Shown piece by piece: positions 6,748 through 21,369 of a stretch of DNA of 64,000 nt. A program made the position numbers and the translations under genes. Under the pieces are notes generated by a model. That model saw only the letters and a program-made list of their open reading frames with translations, was not told the DNA's origin and did not search any database. The stretch lies in IMG/VR virus record IMGVR_UViG_3300048438_000153, positions 211,103 to 275,102 of that record; one strand, given 5' to 3'. Each line of letters starts with the position of its first letter. Within the stretch, counting starts at the first letter, position 1.

Positions 6748-7683
6748 TTAAGAAACCATAAGACGGAGCAACCCCGTTTTGAACGCCGAAAACGGCGACA
6801 CAACTCCGCTAATTGCAAGGTTTTCGCAATGATAGAGGACACCTAAGATTTCTCTCAATTTTTTTGTAGTGAACCTACGCGCTCTAGGAACGAGCACATC
6901 ACCCACAAGCCAACTTTGAACGCCTATTTCTTCAGAGATACCTTGCACAGAAGTGACCCCTCTGTCGATACAAAGTCTTACCGATAAGAGCTGAACTATA
7001 TTCTTGTGAAGTAGACCCGCGACCAATCCCATCGTCGGGTCTTTGTCTCTGTTCTTCTCAAAGCGAGCGCAAGTTTTAAGAAAGTTAGTCGGATTCCATG
7101 AGATCACCGCATCAGTCAGAAGCACTCCATCCATTTCTTTCAAGGGCGCAATCACCGACAAGACCTCTATGGGAGTGACCTCACTCCCCTCAGCGACGTA
7201 GCCGATCTTCAGAGCCTCGTAGGTTAAGACTCCAACATCTTGACCTACTCGCTGAACCACACTCTCACAGATAGACAGACTGATCTGCTTCCCCTGATCC
7301 GCCACCATCTTCTGAAAGAACTTCGCATACCACTCCGCGAGCTTCTTCTTACTCTTAGGTATCTCGTAACAGTCTTTCTTTTTGACTCCCATGAGTGCTT
7401 TCGGCACTACGCGGTCTGCTAAATAGAGAACACCGAAGCCCTCTTTCTGAGGGATGTGTGCGAGGTTCTTTAACCCTGTCGGGTTCGAGATCACGATGAG
7501 CTTATCCACCACGTCAAAGAGTCCCAAATCAAAGGCTTCCTCGATCTCACTCTTAGAGGATTTCTTTCCATCTAGGTAGATCACCTCCCATCCGAGCGCA
7601 TAAGCATCGTTGATGATTTCTCTTGAAGCATGAAAGGCGAGGTCTTTGAACGTACCGTAGATGACTCTGTGTTCTTTCTTCAT
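6748..7683 (-). CDS. holA: DNA polymerase III delta subunit-like (clamp loader)
   Basis: LGLFDVVDKLIVI and VQRVGQDVGVLTYEALKI (delta-like); ~310 aa; adjacent to a delta'-like gene. Confidence 0.75.
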   Translation of the reverse strand: MKKEHRVIYGTFKDLAFHASREIINDAYALGWEVIYLDGKKSSKSEIEEAFDLGLFDVVDKLIVISNPTGLKNLAHIPQKEGFGVLYLADRVVPKALMGVKKKDCYEIPKSKKKLAEWYAKFFQKMVADQGKQISLSICESVVQRVGQDVGVLTYEALKIGYVAEGSEVTPIEVLSVIAPLKEMDGVLLTDAVISWNPTNFLKTCARFEKNRDKDPTMGLVAGLLHKNIVQLLSVRLCIDRGVTSVQGISEEIGVQSWLVGDVLVPRARRFTTKKLREILGVLYHCENLAISGVVSPFSAFKTGLLRLMVS

Positions 7684-8264
7684 TTGTGGACTCCTAGAAA
7701 GTATCCACTGAGGGCGGAGTGAGAAACCCTCTTCCTCGCTAAGAGTGACCTCAGCTCGTCTGTATACAAGTCGGTGTCCTCCTCTTTGATAAGGACTTCA
7801 AGATAGGCTTCCATAAATGCCCTCTCAGATCCCTTCTCCACCTTCGCAAGTACCTTGAGTCCTCTTAAGAGGTTATCTTCGCTCAGAGCGCCATACAGAG
7901 CCTCTGCGTCTTCATAGAGATCATGCTCCTGTCGGGGCGCGTAATGAAACTTCTCTCCACAGCGAGATCGGATAGTATTAGGAACGCCACCTAAGTCATT
8001 CGCCCATAGGAAAAGGGTTGGGCTGTTGGGCGTAGGCTCTTCGATGCGCTTAAGAAGAATATCAAGGGCTGACGGATCAGCCTCATCGAGTGGACCTGCT
8101 ACTAGACAGGGATTCTTATGGGGGTAAACCTGAGTGAAGAGGCTCATCAATAGCCTCACTCCGTCTACCTTCAGATTTGTGATCGGCTCATGAACAAGCT
8201 CATAGCCCTCTAGCTCTTCAGCGAGGCCGTTCTTAACGCCCCTTCCATGATGAATGAAAATCAT
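7680..8264 (-). CDS. holB: DNA polymerase III delta' subunit-like (short)
   Basis: ALDILLKRIEEP and PNTIRSRC motifs; likely start ATG 8264 after a GAGGAG RBS. Confidence 0.75.
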   Translation of the reverse strand: MIFIHHGRGVKNGLAEELEGYELVHEPITNLKVDGVRLLMSLFTQVYPHKNPCLVAGPLDEADPSALDILLKRIEEPTPNSPTLFLWANDLGGVPNTIRSRCGEKFHYAPRQEHDLYEDAEALYGALSEDNLLRGLKVLAKVEKGSERAFMEAYLEVLIKEEDTDLYTDELRSLLARKRVSHSALSGYFLGVHK

Positions 8265-8289
8265 GCTGTCTCCTCTCTTGTGACCCTTA

Positions 8290-8298
8290 CCTATATCA
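8290..8298 (-). promoter_or_regulatory. Putative extended -10 promoter (TGATATAGG) for holB-holA
   Basis: TGnTAT motif about 26 nt upstream of ATG 8264. Confidence 0.45.
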
Positions 8299-8384
8299 GA
8301 ACACCCATCAAGGTAAGAGATATCCATACAGGAGGTTATCTTAAGTTTCTGCTTGAACCTCGTCTCTGCCTCCGATATACAGGT

Positions 8385-8800
8385 TCACGATCTGACTCAA
8401 CAACGGTTTGAGTCTCATGGGCTCTTCCCTCCGACTAGCGAAACTGAGGATAATCTTATCCCGACTAAAAGGAGGCAACCCTACTGAGCTTGAGAAAGCT
8501 CTTAGGGCAGAAACCCTCATGTGACGTAAGTCACTCGGTTGAAAAGCGTACCGATGGATCTCAATCAGTAACGAGACTCGGCAACTACTCTCTCAGAGTA
8601 AGTACCCTGTAGGTTGGTCAACTCCGTTGATAGAACCTGATAAACAGTCTGCTCTTTCTCACTCCCTTGATAGTCTCTTGTGAGCCTCTAGGTTTATTCT
8701 TTCCCTTACCTAGTAGGTTGTCTCAGATAGAAACTATCTTAGTATCTCTCTTTAGTAGAGATAGGAAGTATAGTTACTCTTCTAAGAAGAATATGAATTA
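8385..8800 (+). ncRNA. Putative structured non-coding RNA, family unknown
   Basis: No ORF >=60 aa; a run of hairpins, including GAGA and GTAA GNRA tetraloops; G-U pairs favour the + strand. Confidence 0.5.
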
Positions 8801-8839
8801 GAAGTAAGTAACTAGAGAAGACTTAGTAAGTCCTCCTAA

Positions 8840-9045
8840 AAACCAAAAGAAAAACTACTCGTACTACTACAAGTACTCTTACTAATCCTCAACCAACTAC
8901 ACCTACAACTAATAGTCCTACTACTACAACAACACATACAGCTCATACTACAACAACTACTAGTCTTACTACATCTACAAGTAATACTACTCCAACTAGT
9001 ACAGCTACACATACATGAACAGATACTATAGATGAACATACACTA
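8840..9045. repeat. G-poor low-complexity CTA/CAA/ACA trinucleotide tract (candidate origin or unwinding element)
   Basis: ctactactacaacaac-type sequence; the Thr-rich + frame has no start codon and an internal TGA. Confidence 0.6.
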
Positions 9046-9189
9046 AAAAAAGAAAGAAGTAGGTTAAGAAAGAACCTACTTATAGAAACTACTTTAGAAA
9101 AAAAAGACTATAGATAAGAAAGTACCTATATAGGTGACTTATAGGCTCCTACCTAGTGGAAGCATGAAAGAACACTAGGGATAAGAATC

Positions 9190-9488
9190 ATGATCGACTT
9201 TTCAGAACAAAATCTAGATGATATGGACTTCGGAGGGATAGACCTATCAGGGTCTATCTTCAACACAAGCTCTCTTAAGAGGGCTAAGTTCATCGGAGGG
9301 ACTTACAGGGACAGCCTGTTTGAAGAACTTCAACCTGATGATCTAGAGGATAATGAGCTTTCCCCATCAGATTTTTCAGGAGCACTTTCGTGAGATTCTC
9401 GATTGCAGATGGGACGACCTTCTATAAGTGTGACTTCAAGTATGTCACGCTGACGCGCTGTATCCGAAACCGCGTCAAAGGGATCTGA
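9190..9488 (+). pseudogene. Pentapeptide-repeat protein broken by a 1-nt frameshift near 9380
   Basis: DFSEQNLDDMDFGGIDLSGSIF... continues in the -1 frame as STFVRFSIADGTTFYKCDFKYVTLTRCIRNRVKGI*, stopping 2 nt before the next ATG; total length 299 nt. Confidence 0.7.
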
Positions 9489-9490
9489 TC

Positions 9491-9895
9491 ATGTGGTTAA
9501 GAAAGTTCAGAGCGAACACAGAAAGTAAACCGCCCGAGCTACTCGCTGTAGAGTTTCCGAAGGCTCTAGAGAATCACATCAAAGAGCTTCTCTCTCTGAG
9601 GAATCAGTTCTACAAGACTTTTGATCGGAAAGTAGAGTCGGCGCTGAAAGAACACGCTGTGACAGGGCTGATCAATCTCTATCACTCTTATTTAGAGAGT
9701 ACGCCCCTACACGACTACATAAAGACCTCTCTCAACGGCGTAGTGATTAGCCGAGAAGGAGGCGTCACTCGATACGCCCTCTCAGAAGCCTCATACGCGC
9801 TTCTAAGCAAGGTTGTCGAAGAGAGAGGTGTCAGTGCCTCAGCGAGAGTCTATTTCCTCCCTGAAGGGGTTATAGACGTCGTTGAGAATTCTTAA
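9491..9895 (+). CDS. Hypothetical protein
   Basis: 134-aa ORF tightly coupled to the upstream gene. Confidence 0.7.
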   Translation: MWLRKFRANTESKPPELLAVEFPKALENHIKELLSLRNQFYKTFDRKVESALKEHAVTGLINLYHSYLESTPLHDYIKTSLNGVVISREGGVTRYALSEASYALLSKVVEERGVSASARVYFLPEGVIDVVENS

Positions 9896-15502: not shown

Positions 15503-15958
15503 ATGTGGTTGACATACCTAATCTTATCTGTTTTTCTAACCACATTAGCCCACGAGTACAGTCATGTCGGTATGGCTCAACTCTTAGTAGGTGTAGATCA
15601 ATACTCCATCAAACCCTTCATCCATAAACACAAAGAATTAGGGCTTGTAGGAGGATCTGTCTCAATCACTTATAAGAGAGCAAGAACAAAGTCAGAAGAA
15701 GCTTGGATTGCCTTCGCCCCACGCCTCACTAATGCTCTCTTCTTAATACTCCTACCGTTCACTGTCGATAAAGGATCTCTAGTGATCATCTTAGTAGCTA
15801 CATTAGGATGCTACGATATGCTCAGGGGATCACTCCCCAATGACTCTGACTGTAAAGTCTATTGCAGTCATTGGAGGGTGAGTCCTTACCTAGTCAGGTA
15901 CTATCAGCTCACTCTTTCTTATGTGAGCTTCCTCACCTTTCTACTCAGGCTTTCTTAG
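15503..15958 (+). CDS. Membrane zinc metalloprotease-like protein (HExxH)
   Basis: LAHEYSH inside a hydrophobic segment, IAFAP, several TM stretches; GAGGAG RBS. Confidence 0.7.
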   Translation: MWLTYLILSVFLTTLAHEYSHVGMAQLLVGVDQYSIKPFIHKHKELGLVGGSVSITYKRARTKSEEAWIAFAPRLTNALFLILLPFTVDKGSLVIILVATLGCYDMLRGSLPNDSDCKVYCSHWRVSPYLVRYYQLTLSYVSFLTFLLRLS

Positions 15959-18900
15959 AGGATCACAAAGTTGATCGTGATCACACTGTCTGCGTTAATC
16001 TGAGAACCTATCCTGTTGACAAGGCTGAACTCGAAGCTCGTAGCGTTCGTGATCGAATGCGCGTATACCTCGATACCGCCCTCAGCGAGAATGTCTCCTC
16101 CATTATCAGCAGAGGCCACTGTAGCCATGATGACGCTTGTAGATAACACTGAAGTGTTATTGACCACAAATCCGATTGAGTGAGCATCATCTGCTATCGC
16201 GGTATCGGTTGTCACCGCGACTTGGAAAGCCTTAGTGTTGGTGCTAAAGAGAGGCGCGTTAGTCACGCCCTCGTCACCTGTAAGACCTGTAGTCTTAGCG
16301 ACTGTAAGACCACCGTTCTTGACATTCAAGCTACCTACGTCAAGGGGAGCGAGATCTGAGTCAGGAACGGAATAAGATGCAGCCGGCTCAGTTATGTCAG
16401 CTCGACCATGAAAAATCTTAAACGCGCCTGACTTACCGCCTACGGTGTTGTCTACCTCATATACGACACCCATAAGGAAGTCAGCAAAGTTAGAATCACC
16501 GTAAGCACCTACAAAACCGAGATCGCGAGTTGATGCTGTATTAGTGTAGCCCACATATAGGGTAGGGTCTTTGAATCTTAAAGACCCTGAAACCGCGCTG
16601 TTTCCTGTGATCACACCTGTGACATCAAGATCGCCCGAGAGAGTCACTTTCTGATCTGCTGTCAGAGTGATCGTAGTCTCTCCGTCTGAGTTCTGAATGA
16701 CGTTATTCCCAAGAATAAGGTTACTGCCTGTCTCTACCTCGCCCGTAAACGTAGCCTTGTTTGCAGAGCTAAGAGTCAGAACAGTTGAAAGAGCACCCGC
16801 ATTATCTCCACCTGTCTGAAAGATAACCGAACCGCCTGTGCCTGTCCCATTACCAACACCCGAGGAAATAGTGAGGTTCTCACCTACGGTGTCTTCGTCA
16901 GTCTGAGTAGTCACAGAAATAGAGGTCGCGTTGCTTCCATCACCTAGAGCTACACCTCCACCGCTAACAGTAAGACTGTTCGATGTGAGTGACCCTGTAG
17001 TTGAAAGGTTCTCATCTCCGAAAGAAATAACCCCCCCCGAGTCGGTAATAGAACCGTCAGCAAGAGTAAGAGTTCCAACAGATGAGCCTGAGACTCCCTC
17101 AGACACTTTCCCGAAGACTACTTTCTCACCTTCATTCGTGGTGACGAACTTGAGGTAAGAGTTAGCTCCCTCTGCGATGTCGAGAGCAGTCGCCTGAGCA
17201 TCCGTAAGACTGATAGAAATGGTATTTCCATCGGCGGAGATACTATCTAGGGAGATATCGCCTACGTTAGTGATGTCTCCATCAGCAACACTTAACGAGG
17301 TAACAGTGGTTGCGCCCGCTCCGAGAGTTCCCGTAGTTGAGAGGTTCTCATCTCCAAAGGAAATAGCTCCGCTTGAGTCAGTAATAGAGCCGTCAGCGAG
17401 AGTAAGAGTTCCAACTGTCGAGCCTGAGACTCCCTCAGAAACCTTTCCGAAGACTACCTTCTCACCAGCGTCAGTTGTTACGAACTTGAGGTAAGAGTTA
17501 ACACCCTCTGTGATATCAAGTGATGATGCTTGGTTATCAGTGAGGTTAAGGGTGATCGCGTTTCCGTCAGCAGAAATACTATCGAGAGCAATATCCCCTA
17601 CGTTAGTGATGTCCCCATCAGTAACACTTAACGAGGTAACAGTGGCAGACCCCGCCCCGAGAGTACCTGTAGTAGAAAGGTTCTCGTTCCCAAAGGAAAT
17701 CGCGCCCCCTGAGTCGGTGATCGACCCGTCAGCGAGAGTAAGAGTTCCAACTGTCGAGCCTGAGACTCCCTCAGAAACCTTCCCGAAGACTACCTTCTCA
17801 TCAGCGTCAGTGGTGACGAACTTGAGGTAAGAGTTAGCTCCCTCAGTAATGTCGAGTGAAGACGCTTGGTTATCAGTGAGGTTAAGGGTGATCGAGTTCC
17901 CGTCAGCAGAAATACTATCGAGAGCAATATCCCCTACGTTGCTGATGTCTCCATCAGCAACACTTAATGAAGTGACAGTGGTTGCGCCCGCCCCGAGAGT
18001 ACCTGTAGTAGAAAGGTTTTCGTCCCCAAAGGAAACAGCGCCCCCTGAGTCAGTAATCGAGCCATCAGCGAGAGTAAGAGTTCCAACAGACGATCCTGAG
18101 ACTCCCTCAGACACCTTCCCGAAAACTACCTTCTCATCAGCGTCTGTAGTTACGAACTTGAGGTAAGAGTTAGCTCCCTCAGTAATGTCGAGTGAAGACG
18201 CTTGGTTATCAGTGAGACTGATGGAAATGGTATTTCCGTCAGCAGAAATACTATCTAGGGCGATGTCCCCTACGTTGGAGATGTCCCCATCAGTAACACT
18301 TAATGAAGTGACAGTGGTAGCTCCCGCGCCGAGAGTACCTGTTGTCGAGAGGTTCTCGTCCCCGAAAGAAATAGCTCCACTTGAGTCAGTGATCGACCCA
18401 TCAGCAAGAGTAAGATCTCCAAAGGTAGATCCTGTTGCTCCCGAGACTGTGCCTGTAGCCTCAAGAGTGCTGACAAGTAAACCAGCCTTAGAAAGACCCA
18501 CAACACCTGAGAAGTCGGTAGTAGTTCCATTTACCGCACCGCTGTGAGTGCCTAGTAAGAATTTACCTTCACCCTCATCCCAAATGATAAGAGCATCGTC
18601 CTCAAGACCTCTATTCAGGAAGATCCCGATATCAGAGTTATTGTTATTATCCCCAATGTCCTTGTTGAGCTCAATCACTTGATCTGCAACAGAAAGGTTG
18701 GTTGTACTGATGATAGTCTGAGTGCCGTTTACGGTAATGTTCGTACAGGTGATAGAACCTGTAGTGGTCAGGTTCTCATCATCAAAAGTGATTGTCCCAC
18801 CTGTGGAGGTAATAGAACCGTCAGCGAGAGTAAGAGTCCCTACGGTAGACCCTGAAGCAAGTGTAGCCACCCCCGCTCCGAGAGTACCTGTGGTAGAAAG

Positions 18901-21369
18901 GTTCTCATCCCCGAAAGAAATCGAACCACCTGAGTCAGTGATCGAACCATCGGCAATAGTAAGAGTTCCAACAGACGATCCTGAGACTCCCTCAGAAACC
19001 TTCCCGAAGACTACCTTCTCATCAGCGTCAGTTGTTACGAACTTGAGGTAAGAGTTAGCTCCCTCAGTGATGTCGAGAGCAGTCGCCTGAGCATCTGTTA
19101 AAGAGATGGTGAGGGTGTCTCCATCGGCGGAGATACTATCGAGGGCGATATCCCCTACATTCGTGATGTCCCCATCAGTAACACTTAACGAGGTAACAGT
19201 GGTTGCGCCCGATCCGAGAGTTCCCGTAGTTGAGAGGTTCTCATCTCCAAAGGAAATCGCGCCCCCTGAGTCAGTAATCGAGCCATCAGCGAGAGTAAGA
19301 TTTCCAACAGACGATCCTGAGACTCCCTCAGAAACCTTCCCGAAGACTACCTTCTCATCAGCGTCAGTTGTTACGAACTTGAGGTAAGAGTTAACACCCT
19401 CAGTGATGTCGAGAGCCGTTGCTTGAGCATCCGTAAGACTGATAGAAATGGTATTCCCATCAGCAGAAATACTATCAAGGGCGACATCACCTACGTTAGT
19501 GATATTTCCGTCAGTAACACTTAATGAAGTGACAGTGGCAGACCCCACTCCGAGAGTTCCCGTAGTTGAGAGGTTCTCGTTCCCGAAAGAAATAGCTCCA
19601 CCTGAGTCAGTAATAGAGCCGTCAGCGAGAGTGAGAGTTCCTACGGTAGACCCTGAGACTCCCTCAGACACTTTCCCGAAGACTACCTTCTCACCTTCAT
19701 TCGTGGTGACGAAGTTAAGGTAAGAGTTACCCGCTTCTGTGATATTGAGCGCGGTAGCTTCGTTATCCGTCAAAGTGATGGTGAGGGCACTGCCGTCAGC
19801 AGAAATGCTGTCGAGGGCGATATCCCCTACGTTAGTGATATTTCCGTCAGTAACACTTAATGAAGTGACAGTGGTAGCCCCCGCGCCGAGAGTACCTGTT
19901 GTCGAGAGGTTCTCGTTCCCAAAGGAAATAGCGCCCCCTGAGTCGGTAATCGACCCGTCAGCGAGAGTAAGAGTTCCTACGGTAGATCCTGAAGCAAGTG
20001 TGGCTACCCCCGCGCCGAGAGTTCCCGTAGTTGAGAGGTTTTCGTTCCCGAAAGAAATAGCTCCACCTGAGTCAGTAATCGACCCGTCAGCGAGAGTAAG
20101 AGTTCCTACGGTAGACCCTGAGACTCCCTCAGAAACCTTTCCGAAGACCACTTTCTCACCTGCGTCAGTTGTTACGAACTTGAGGTAAGAGTTAACACCC
20201 TCAGTAATGTCGAGTGAAGACTCTTGGTTGTCTGTAAGGCTGATAGAAATGGCATTTCCGTCAGCAGAAATGCTATCTAGGGAGATATCGCCTACATTCG
20301 TGATATTTCCGTCAGTAACACTTAATGAAGTGACAGTGGTTGCTCCAGCTCCGAGAGTACCTGAAGTTGAGAGGTTCTCATCCCCGAAAGAAATCGAACC
20401 GCCTGAGTCAGTAATCGAGCCATCAGCGAGAGTAAGAGTTCCAACTGTCGAGCCTGAAGCAAGTGTAGCCACACCCGCTCCGAGAGTTCCCGTAGTTGAG
20501 AGGTTCTCATCCCCGAAAGAAATCGCCCCACCTGAGTCAGTGATCGACCCGTCAGCGAGAGTAAGAGTCCCTACGGCAGACCCTGAGACACTCTCAAATA
20601 CTTTCCCGAAGACCACTTTCTCACCCTCGTCAGTTGTTACGAACTTGAGGTAAGAGTTAGCTCCCTCAGTAATGTCAAGAGACGACGCTTGATTGTCCGT
20701 AAGACTAATAGAAATGGTGTTGTTATCGGCGGAGATACTATCTAGGGCGATGTCCCCCACGTTAGTGATGTTTCCTTCGTTAACATTAAGAGATCCAAGA
20801 GAGAGAGTCCCTGATGTAAAGTCAGCGTTCCAAGAGTTGTCATTCTCGGTCACGTCAGCAGTACCTAGAGCGAAATAGTTGTTCTCTTCATCGAAATAGA
20901 AAACGCCAGGGTTCTGAGCCCCACCACCCTCTCCATCAGTCTGAAGTGGTCGTGTGAAGATGATGCCGATGGAGTCTCCGTTTGTTCCATTCGCATCGTG
21001 GGCGTTACCCTCACTCCCATCAGCCAAGACGATAACTCTATCCTGAACGAGAAGATCATTCGTAGTATTCTGAGTGGTTACGTTAAGTGTCCCAGGAATA
21101 GAAATGATCGAGTTGGCTTGACCTAATGTGATCGTGTTGGCTCCAAGAGTAGGACCAATCACGATTGATCCTGTCACCCCTATGTTTGAGGTGATTGAAG
21201 CATTGTTAGACATATCGGCGCGAAGAAGGTCTGCGCCTCCCGCATCTGCGCCGTTGTGGACGCGGATAGACTCAGTAGTGGTATCTACCGTGACCTCACC
21301 GATTGCGCCCGTAAAGGCATTGTTCTCAGCAGTAGTGCCTCTGCGTAATTGTACTCTTCTTACAGCCAT
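15955..21369 (-). CDS. Tail fibre/adhesin with an Mtd_N-like N-terminus and 112-aa tandem repeats
   Basis: VQLRRGTTAENNAFTGAIGEVTVDTT N-terminus; nine copies of the YL(K/N)FVTT...TLADGSITDSGG unit. Confidence 0.85.
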   Translation of the reverse strand: MAVRRVQLRRGTTAENNAFTGAIGEVTVDTTTESIRVHNGADAGGADLLRADMSNNASITSNIGVTGSIVIGPTLGANTITLGQANSIISIPGTLNVTTQNTTNDLLVQDRVIVLADGSEGNAHDANGTNGDSIGIIFTRPLQTDGEGGGAQNPGVFYFDEENNYFALGTADVTENDNSWNADFTSGTLSLGSLNVNEGNITNVGDIALDSISADNNTISISLTDNQASSLDITEGANSYLKFVTTDEGEKVVFGKVFESVSGSAVGTLTLADGSITDSGGAISFGDENLSTTGTLGAGVATLASGSTVGTLTLADGSITDSGGSISFGDENLSTSGTLGAGATTVTSLSVTDGNITNVGDISLDSISADGNAISISLTDNQESSLDITEGVNSYLKFVTTDAGEKVVFGKVSEGVSGSTVGTLTLADGSITDSGGAISFGNENLSTTGTLGAGVATLASGSTVGTLTLADGSITDSGGAISFGNENLSTTGTLGAGATTVTSLSVTDGNITNVGDIALDSISADGSALTITLTDNEATALNITEAGNSYLNFVTTNEGEKVVFGKVSEGVSGSTVGTLTLADGSITDSGGAISFGNENLSTTGTLGVGSATVTSLSVTDGNITNVGDVALDSISADGNTISISLTDAQATALDITEGVNSYLKFVTTDADEKVVFGKVSEGVSGSSVGNLTLADGSITDSGGAISFGDENLSTTGTLGSGATTVTSLSVTDGDITNVGDIALDSISADGDTLTISLTDAQATALDITEGANSYLKFVTTDADEKVVFGKVSEGVSGSSVGTLTIADGSITDSGGSISFGDENLSTTGTLGAGVATLASGSTVGTLTLADGSITSTGGTITFDDENLTTTGSITCTNITVNGTQTIISTTNLSVADQVIELNKDIGDNNNNSDIGIFLNRGLEDDALIIWDEGEGKFLLGTHSGAVNGTTTDFSGVVGLSKAGLLVSTLEATGTVSGATGSTFGDLTLADGSITDSSGAISFGDENLSTTGTLGAGATTVTSLSVTDGDISNVGDIALDSISADGNTISISLTDNQASSLDITEGANSYLKFVTTDADEKVVFGKVSEGVSGSSVGTLTLADGSITDSGGAVSFGDENLSTTGTLGAGATTVTSLSVADGDISNVGDIALDSISADGNSITLNLTDNQASSLDITEGANSYLKFVTTDADEKVVFGKVSEGVSGSTVGTLTLADGSITDSGGAISFGNENLSTTGTLGAGSATVTSLSVTDGDITNVGDIALDSISADGNAITLNLTDNQASSLDITEGVNSYLKFVTTDAGEKVVFGKVSEGVSGSTVGTLTLADGSITDSSGAISFGDENLSTTGTLGAGATTVTSLSVADGDITNVGDISLDSISADGNTISISLTDAQATALDIAEGANSYLKFVTTNEGEKVVFGKVSEGVSGSSVGTLTLADGSITDSGGVISFGDENLSTTGSLTSNSLTVSGGGVALGDGSNATSISVTTQTDEDTVGENLTISSGVGNGTGTGGSVIFQTGGDNAGALSTVLTLSSANKATFTGEVETGSNLILGNNVIQNSDGETTITLTADQKVTLSGDLDVTGVITGNSAVSGSLRFKDPTLYVGYTNTASTRDLGFVGAYGDSNFADFLMGVVYEVDNTVGGKSGAFKIFHGRADITEPAASYSVPDSDLAPLDVGSLNVKNGGLTVAKTTGLTGDEGVTNAPLFSTNTKAFQVAVTTDTAIADDAHSIGFVVNNTSVLSTSVIMATVASADNGGDILAEGGIEVYAHSITNATSFEFSLVNRIGSQINADSVITINFVIL
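16980..20780 (-). repeat. Nine coding repeats with a 336-bp core unit and optional 129-bp insert
   Basis: Equivalent positions at 17158, 17494, 17830, 18166, 19051, 19387, 19723, 20188, 20653 (spacings 336, 336, 336, 885, 336, 336, 465, 465). Confidence 0.9.

Follow-up and report, generated by a model that had tools for sequence, protein, structure and literature searches.

We analyzed a 64-kb window (the whole stretch of DNA under study, 64,000 nucleotides of IMG/VR record IMGVR_UViG_3300048438_000153) from an uncultured 275-kb jumbo phage. The window is identical to part of a 275-kb IMG/VR contig and an 84-kb one, and searches of GenBank phages at the DNA and protein levels showed no cultured relative. 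On the left of the region of interest is a minus-strand module of ribonucleotide reductase (RNR) and two clamp-loader subunits, one of which is holB-like (delta-prime; Pfam DNA_pol3_delta2). On the right is a short plus-strand pentapeptide-repeat gene. Although the mechanical ORF call of the holB-like gene begins at 8327, the likely true start is ATG 8264, behind a GGAG. All 60 homologues found at high significance begin there, with MI(F/I)IHHG, and are 193-199 aa long. This leaves about 920 nt (8265-9189) without a credible gene. The pentapeptide-repeat gene matches only the first 65 residues of the 339-aa homologue in L009 (an L number denotes a locus found in our searches), so it looks truncated, and the ORF that follows is unrelated to it. 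The features of the region are listed in Table 1.

Table 1. Features of the window, with positions counted from its first nucleotide.
Feature	Position	Strand	Description
holB-like clamp-loader gene	7680..8264	-	Divergent from the RNA
Promoter-like element of the RNA	8353..8380	+	TTGAAC (8353-58), 15-nt spacer, GATATA(C) (8374-80); the box ends about 10 nt before the first helix
Antisense ORF	8341-8520	-	59 aa
5' domain of the RNA	8389..8560	+	Multi-way junction closed by H1
H1	8389-93 with 8556-60	+	GAUCU with GGAUC
H2	8394-8414	+	GACTCAA/TTGAGTC
H3	8419-21 and UCC, with 8510-16	+	GGG and UCC paired with GAA and CCC; GGG 8419-21 pairs with CCC 8514-16
H4	8428-32 with 8471-75	+	CCTCC/GGAGG
H5	8479-8507	+	CCCTA..GAGA..TAGGG, GNRA loop
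H6	8521-34	+	GTGAC-GTAA-GTCAC, GNRA loop
H7	8535-39 with 8550-54	+	TCGGT/ACCGA, conserved 10-nt loop
Linker and second junction	8561..8660	+	Conserved linker (AAUCAGUA, ACUCGGC), two hairpins, invariant ACCCUGU between them, conserved GUCUGCUCUUUC after them
Hairpin of the second junction	8586-8600	+	TACTCT/AGAGTA
Hairpin of the second junction	8611-38	+	AGGTT-GTCAAC/GTTGAT-AACCT
Long irregular hairpin H10	8669..8738	+	8669-8692 with 8709-8738, pyrimidine-rich loop
Hairpin	8743..8763	+	UAUCUCU/AGAGAUA
3' strand of a candidate pseudoknot	8787..8793	+	AAGAAUA, pairs with the H10 loop UAUUCUU (8695-8701)
Conserved purine-rich block	8800..8829	+	UAAGUAA .. GAGAAGACUU
Tract almost free of G	8830..9016	+	A 41%, C 28%, T 24%, G about 5%; (A-C-W)n
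Terminator-like hairpin	9057-9081	-	9-bp hairpin followed by a T-run, for leftward transcription
Palindromic probable promoter box	9125..9134	+	CCTATATAGG, 65 nt upstream of the next gene
Pentapeptide-repeat gene	9190-9393	+	67 aa
ORF	9491-9895	+	134 aa
Probable tail fibre gene	15958-21369	-	1804 aa, begins with an Mtd_N domain (N-terminal domain of the major tropism determinant), Fn3-like stretches
Recurrent YYKATATA box	8299(-), 8372(+), 9125(+)/9134(-), 21423(-), 37965(+), 43449(+), 63392(+)/63401(-)		Probable -10-like promoter element
Repeated motif of about 25 nt	55728, 58715, 59420, 62298, 63046	+	Core CCTCACCAATACC, in short gaps between minus-strand genes; probably a second promoter or regulatory class for that gene block

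A conserved RNA fold beside the clamp-loader genes

A sequence-only reading had proposed eleven pairings between 8350 and 8800 and a plus-strand RNA, and every inverted repeat it listed is present. Folding energy alone is weak evidence for such an RNA. The 451 nt of 8350-8800 fold only slightly better than shuffles on the + strand (z = -1.48, with 10 of 100 shuffles as good) and better on the - strand (z = -2.93). The 5' domain on its own folds with z = -3.13, and its MFE equals the structure supported by the comparative data described below.

We searched with the clamp-loader protein and obtained three IMG/VR loci and 65 metagenome loci from marine and freshwater samples, on contigs of up to 345 kb. 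In each locus, the region upstream of the clamp loader was examined by BLASTN, iterated nhmmer, and a covariance model of the 5' domain (R1). About 20 distinct relatives carry a homologous RNA (group 1) in the same slot, always on the strand opposite the clamp loader, and their clamp loaders are 90% down to about 40% identical to that of the window. Detection was strong in the window, L003, L008, L009, L012-L015, L017, L020, L026, L030, L033, L034, L044, and L073, and weak but well placed in L036, L045, L063, L062, L066, and L068. A 20-nt hairpin pattern searched in IMG/VR gave one chance hit (L007) in high-GC coding DNA. A gapped pattern scan of 185,579 bacterial and archaeal genomes gave 20 hits, all of which were rejected by R1.

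On the model-based alignment of the 5' domain, 39 pairs in 9 helices are 94.3% paired, and 31 of them show changes on both sides. None of 500 shuffles reached any of the five measures, and sliding the partners by 1-3 columns dropped the pairing to 31-54%. On a nine-sequence alignment of the whole RNA, 82 pairs are 96.7% paired and 36 are compensated. Because the sequences are related, these cell counts overstate the number of independent events, but the slid controls and the many different pair types argue that the signal is nevertheless real. In the linker and second junction, three of four helices have 2, 3, and 5 pairs with compensatory change, whereas the other has none, and the sequence blocks there are invariant across group 1. 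H10 contains 15 pairs, 8 with compensatory change, and is absent from the shorter L026/L030/L034 subgroup.

Eight of the eleven pairings proposed earlier (H2, H4, H5, H6, H7, and the hairpins at 8586-8600, 8611-38, and 8743-63) are kept by compensatory changes in related phages. The last of these is replaced by UACCU/AGGUA and UACU/AGUA in relatives, as read by eye. A GGATAA-TC-TTATCC hairpin enclosed by H4 is lineage-specific, being replaced by other hairpins or absent in relatives. Two proposed helices are not supported. Instead of a long-range GGGCTC/GAGCCT helix, the GGG and CCC of H3 pair and covary (GAG/CUC), and instead of a local AGATAG/CTATCT hairpin, CUAUC 8734-38 pairs with GAUAG 8669-73 as the base of H10, and this pair also covaries. 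A downstream CCUCC that could compete for the GGAGG of H4 shows no covariation. The closing helix H1 had been missed, and the RNA is longer than the earlier reading supposed. Its minimum 3' extent of 8793 is set by a tentative pseudoknot with the H10 loop. Four of the seven positions are compensated across four lineages (UUAUCUU/AAGAUAA, UUAUCCU/AGGAUAG, GUAUCCU/AGGAUAC), although single-sequence shuffles are not significant and a local hairpin competes for the same bases.

The strand assignment is supported by 29-33 G-U pairs against 7-13 A-C or C-A mismatches, and every alignment folds better forward than reverse-complemented. The GNRA loops are kept (GAGA to GUGA in H5) even where the stem is fully replaced, as in GUGAC-GUAA-GUCAC becoming AGGG-GAAA-CCCU. 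ORFs of 40-59 aa exist on both strands, but they are absent or in other frames in homologues, and L026/L034 have no antisense ORF. Stem replacements change the putative amino acids radically while keeping the pairs, and indels are not multiples of three. A protein-coding reading is thus very unlikely. Membership of a known ribozyme class, such as group I intron, RNase P, or tmRNA, is equally doubtful. Rfam gave no match at gathering or relaxed thresholds (E up to 10 in the window and up to 1 in eight homologous loci), ARAGORN found no tRNA or tmRNA in the window, a group I-like long-range pairing between GACUA and UAGUC is not conserved, and there are no flanking exons. Literature searches found no description of this RNA.

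Transcription unit and the G-poor tract

The promoter-like element is conserved in position in all group 1 homologues, as TTGA(A/T)N, a 15-16 nt spacer, and (T/G)ATATA. A consensus sigma-70 scan did not call it, and the -10-like box lacks the usual final T of sigma-70 promoters. However, the YYKATATA box class occurs 12 times in the window, 10 of them intergenic and several 35-65 nt upstream of gene starts, including those of the clamp-loader operon, the pentapeptide gene, and the RecA gene. The earlier remark that this site resembles the -10 sites of the phage therefore holds. An order of promoter, folded RNA, rut-like tract, and gene would fit a cis-acting leader in which the RNA senses a signal or modifies RNA polymerase and so controls Rho-dependent termination and read-through, and co-directional genes do follow in window-type loci and in those of the second RNA described below (group 2). 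This reading is unlikely, because the downstream gene differs between relatives and lies on the opposite strand in L026/L030/L034 and in the weak-hit loci. In the window the downstream gene has its own promoter box, and no riboswitch family matches.

A tract of 130-430 nt almost free of G on the RNA strand follows the RNA in every homologue examined, starting roughly 40-100 nt after it. G is 1-8% and C exceeds G, while the sequence of the tract is not conserved. The tract shows strong three-base periodicity, with a period-3 power of z = 35 in the window and 7-37 in 26 of the 31 distinct tracts analyzed, including every tract that follows a strong RNA match. Repeat units and spacings are multiples of three. 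The tract is without ATG, GTG, or TTG, which argues against ordinary coding, and no intrinsic terminator lies between the RNA and the tract. Its composition, C-rich, unstructured, and longer than 80 nt, fits a Rho loading and termination region, although a Rho site does not explain the periodicity, which rut sites are not known to need.

The periodicity raises the possibility that the RNA and its tail are read in triplets, with the fold recruiting ribosomes or another machine to make a Thr/Ser/Pro-rich peptide without a start codon, in the manner of tmRNA or an IRES. The window tract has a stop-free Thr/Ser-rich frame, and a sense Thr/Ser/Pro/Gln frame is open for up to 133 codons (L039), about twice the shuffled expectation, while antisense frames are not consistently open. 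Nevertheless, this translation is very unlikely. There is no conserved Shine-Dalgarno sequence or tRNA-like domain, some tracts have early stops in every frame, and the frame differs relative to the conserved GAGAAGACUU block between the window, L014, and L003, as judged by eye. The third position is never G and rarely C, against 52% GC3 in the phage's genes, and ACC plus ACG make up 1 of 32 Thr codons, against 34% in genes. Another version, the loading of a protein that binds in triplets, such as a recombinase or helicase, at a replication-control site, is not excluded, but the triplet-register idea in either form remains remote. A diversity-generating-retroelement reading of the A-rich tract was rejected, since no variable-repeat copy or template repeat was found in the 64 kb, although a giant protein carries an Mtd_N domain.

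The earlier reading had also suggested a replication-primer RNA leading into the tract, and this is neither shown nor excluded. In such an origin transcript, the folded RNA would position or stabilize an RNA-DNA hybrid that primes or activates replication. The fixed position beside the clamp-loader and RNR genes, the low GC of the tract (33% against 48%), and the bacterial-type replisome and RecA encoded by the phage are in its favor. Freshwater relatives also carry large arrays in this intergenic region. L017 (1500-2060) has 34-nt x7 and 17-nt x8 repeats, L039 (1390-1700) has five CCTACTGAGAGA copies plus TTATCCA clusters, and L051/L057/L060 have 600-750 nt of CTTATC repeats, with CTTATC/GATAAG at 10-33 per kb. 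These arrays suggest a protein-binding hub, possibly an origin. However, iteron arrays are absent from the window and the marine relatives, and DnaA-box enrichment appears only in a few freshwater relatives and not in the window. There is no GC-skew inflection at 8-9 kb within the 64-kb window, where skew follows gene orientation. A G-poor RNA with a G-poor non-template strand is expected to be poorly suited to a stable R-loop, and the tertiary-style conservation exceeds what primer RNAs usually show. We consider the origin transcript the main rival, possible but less likely.

Relatives with a second RNA or none, and the likely role of the RNA

In a sister set of phages (L022-L025, L027-L029, L032, L035, L037, L038, L039), the same slot again holds a promoter box, an RNA, and a G-poor periodic tract, but the RNA is sequence-distinct (for example L024:2581-2945, minus strand). 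It has 61 predicted pairs, 24 of them compensated, and 97.7% of cells are paired. A model of it (R2) finds only that set, and R1 does not find it. The two groups share a few motifs (GUACCCU, UAGUCUCUU, and a GNRA-type hairpin directly followed by a stem with a GCG/ACG-containing loop), so their homology is possible but unproven. Other relatives lack an RNA, so it is dispensable or replaceable. Some of these have the CTTATC-type repeats, and some have unrelated genes there, an AdoMet-decarboxylase-like gene and an endonuclease V-like gene, both recognized by eye. In L053, for example, the slot holds a 130-aa gene that looks like S-adenosylmethionine decarboxylase (2554-2946, +) and a 144-aa gene that looks like a pyrimidine-dimer glycosylase (2033-2467, -), again recognized by eye only.

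Taken from sequence comparison without expression data, 8389 to about 8793 (+) is a gene for a roughly 400-nt non-coding RNA with an evolutionarily maintained, multi-domain fold. It is not a leader of a fixed downstream gene, and it belongs to no Rfam family. With moderate confidence, we infer that it is a stand-alone RNA acting in trans, as a ribonucleoprotein scaffold or a ribozyme-like molecule, because its junction nucleotides are more conserved than its helices, as in RNAs with tertiary structure. Its strict back-to-back position with the clamp-loader and ribonucleotide-reductase module suggests a role linked to genome replication or its control, although this link rests on synteny alone. 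Transcription is inferred to run on into the tract, which probably serves as a Rho loading and termination zone or as a single-strand binding platform.

GOLLD, ROOL, and OLE are similarly several hundred nucleotides long, with multi-domain folds, GNRA loops, pseudoknot candidates, conserved junctions, and no obvious partner gene, and GOLLD and ROOL are also phage-borne. The present RNA matches none of them, nor HEARO or raiA, in Rfam 15, and it is tied to one genomic slot and followed by a G-free periodic tract. ColE1 RNA II and the T4 and T7 origin transcripts are likewise promoter-driven, folded, untranslated RNAs that run into an AT-rich region next to replication functions. Here, the sequence alone gives no evidence of a hybrid or of RNase H processing, and the conservation looks like tertiary structure rather than a folding pathway. 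The phi29 packaging RNA is also a phage-encoded, promoter-proximal RNA conserved in fold more than in sequence, and it works as part of a protein machine, but it is about 170 nt, has a different architecture, and sits beside packaging genes near a genome end, and no packaging link is seen here.

Large RNAs with conserved, tertiary-looking folds are rare, and nearly every such class has turned out to be a ribozyme, a ribonucleoprotein core, or a new assembly. The RNA described here is of a new family confined to an uncultured clade of aquatic jumbo phages, although its mechanism may still turn out to be of a known type. A second, unrelated-looking structured RNA in the same slot of a sister clade suggests that the slot itself requires a folded RNA. 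The result is a concrete, testable entry point into RNA-based functions in jumbo-phage replication or host takeover.
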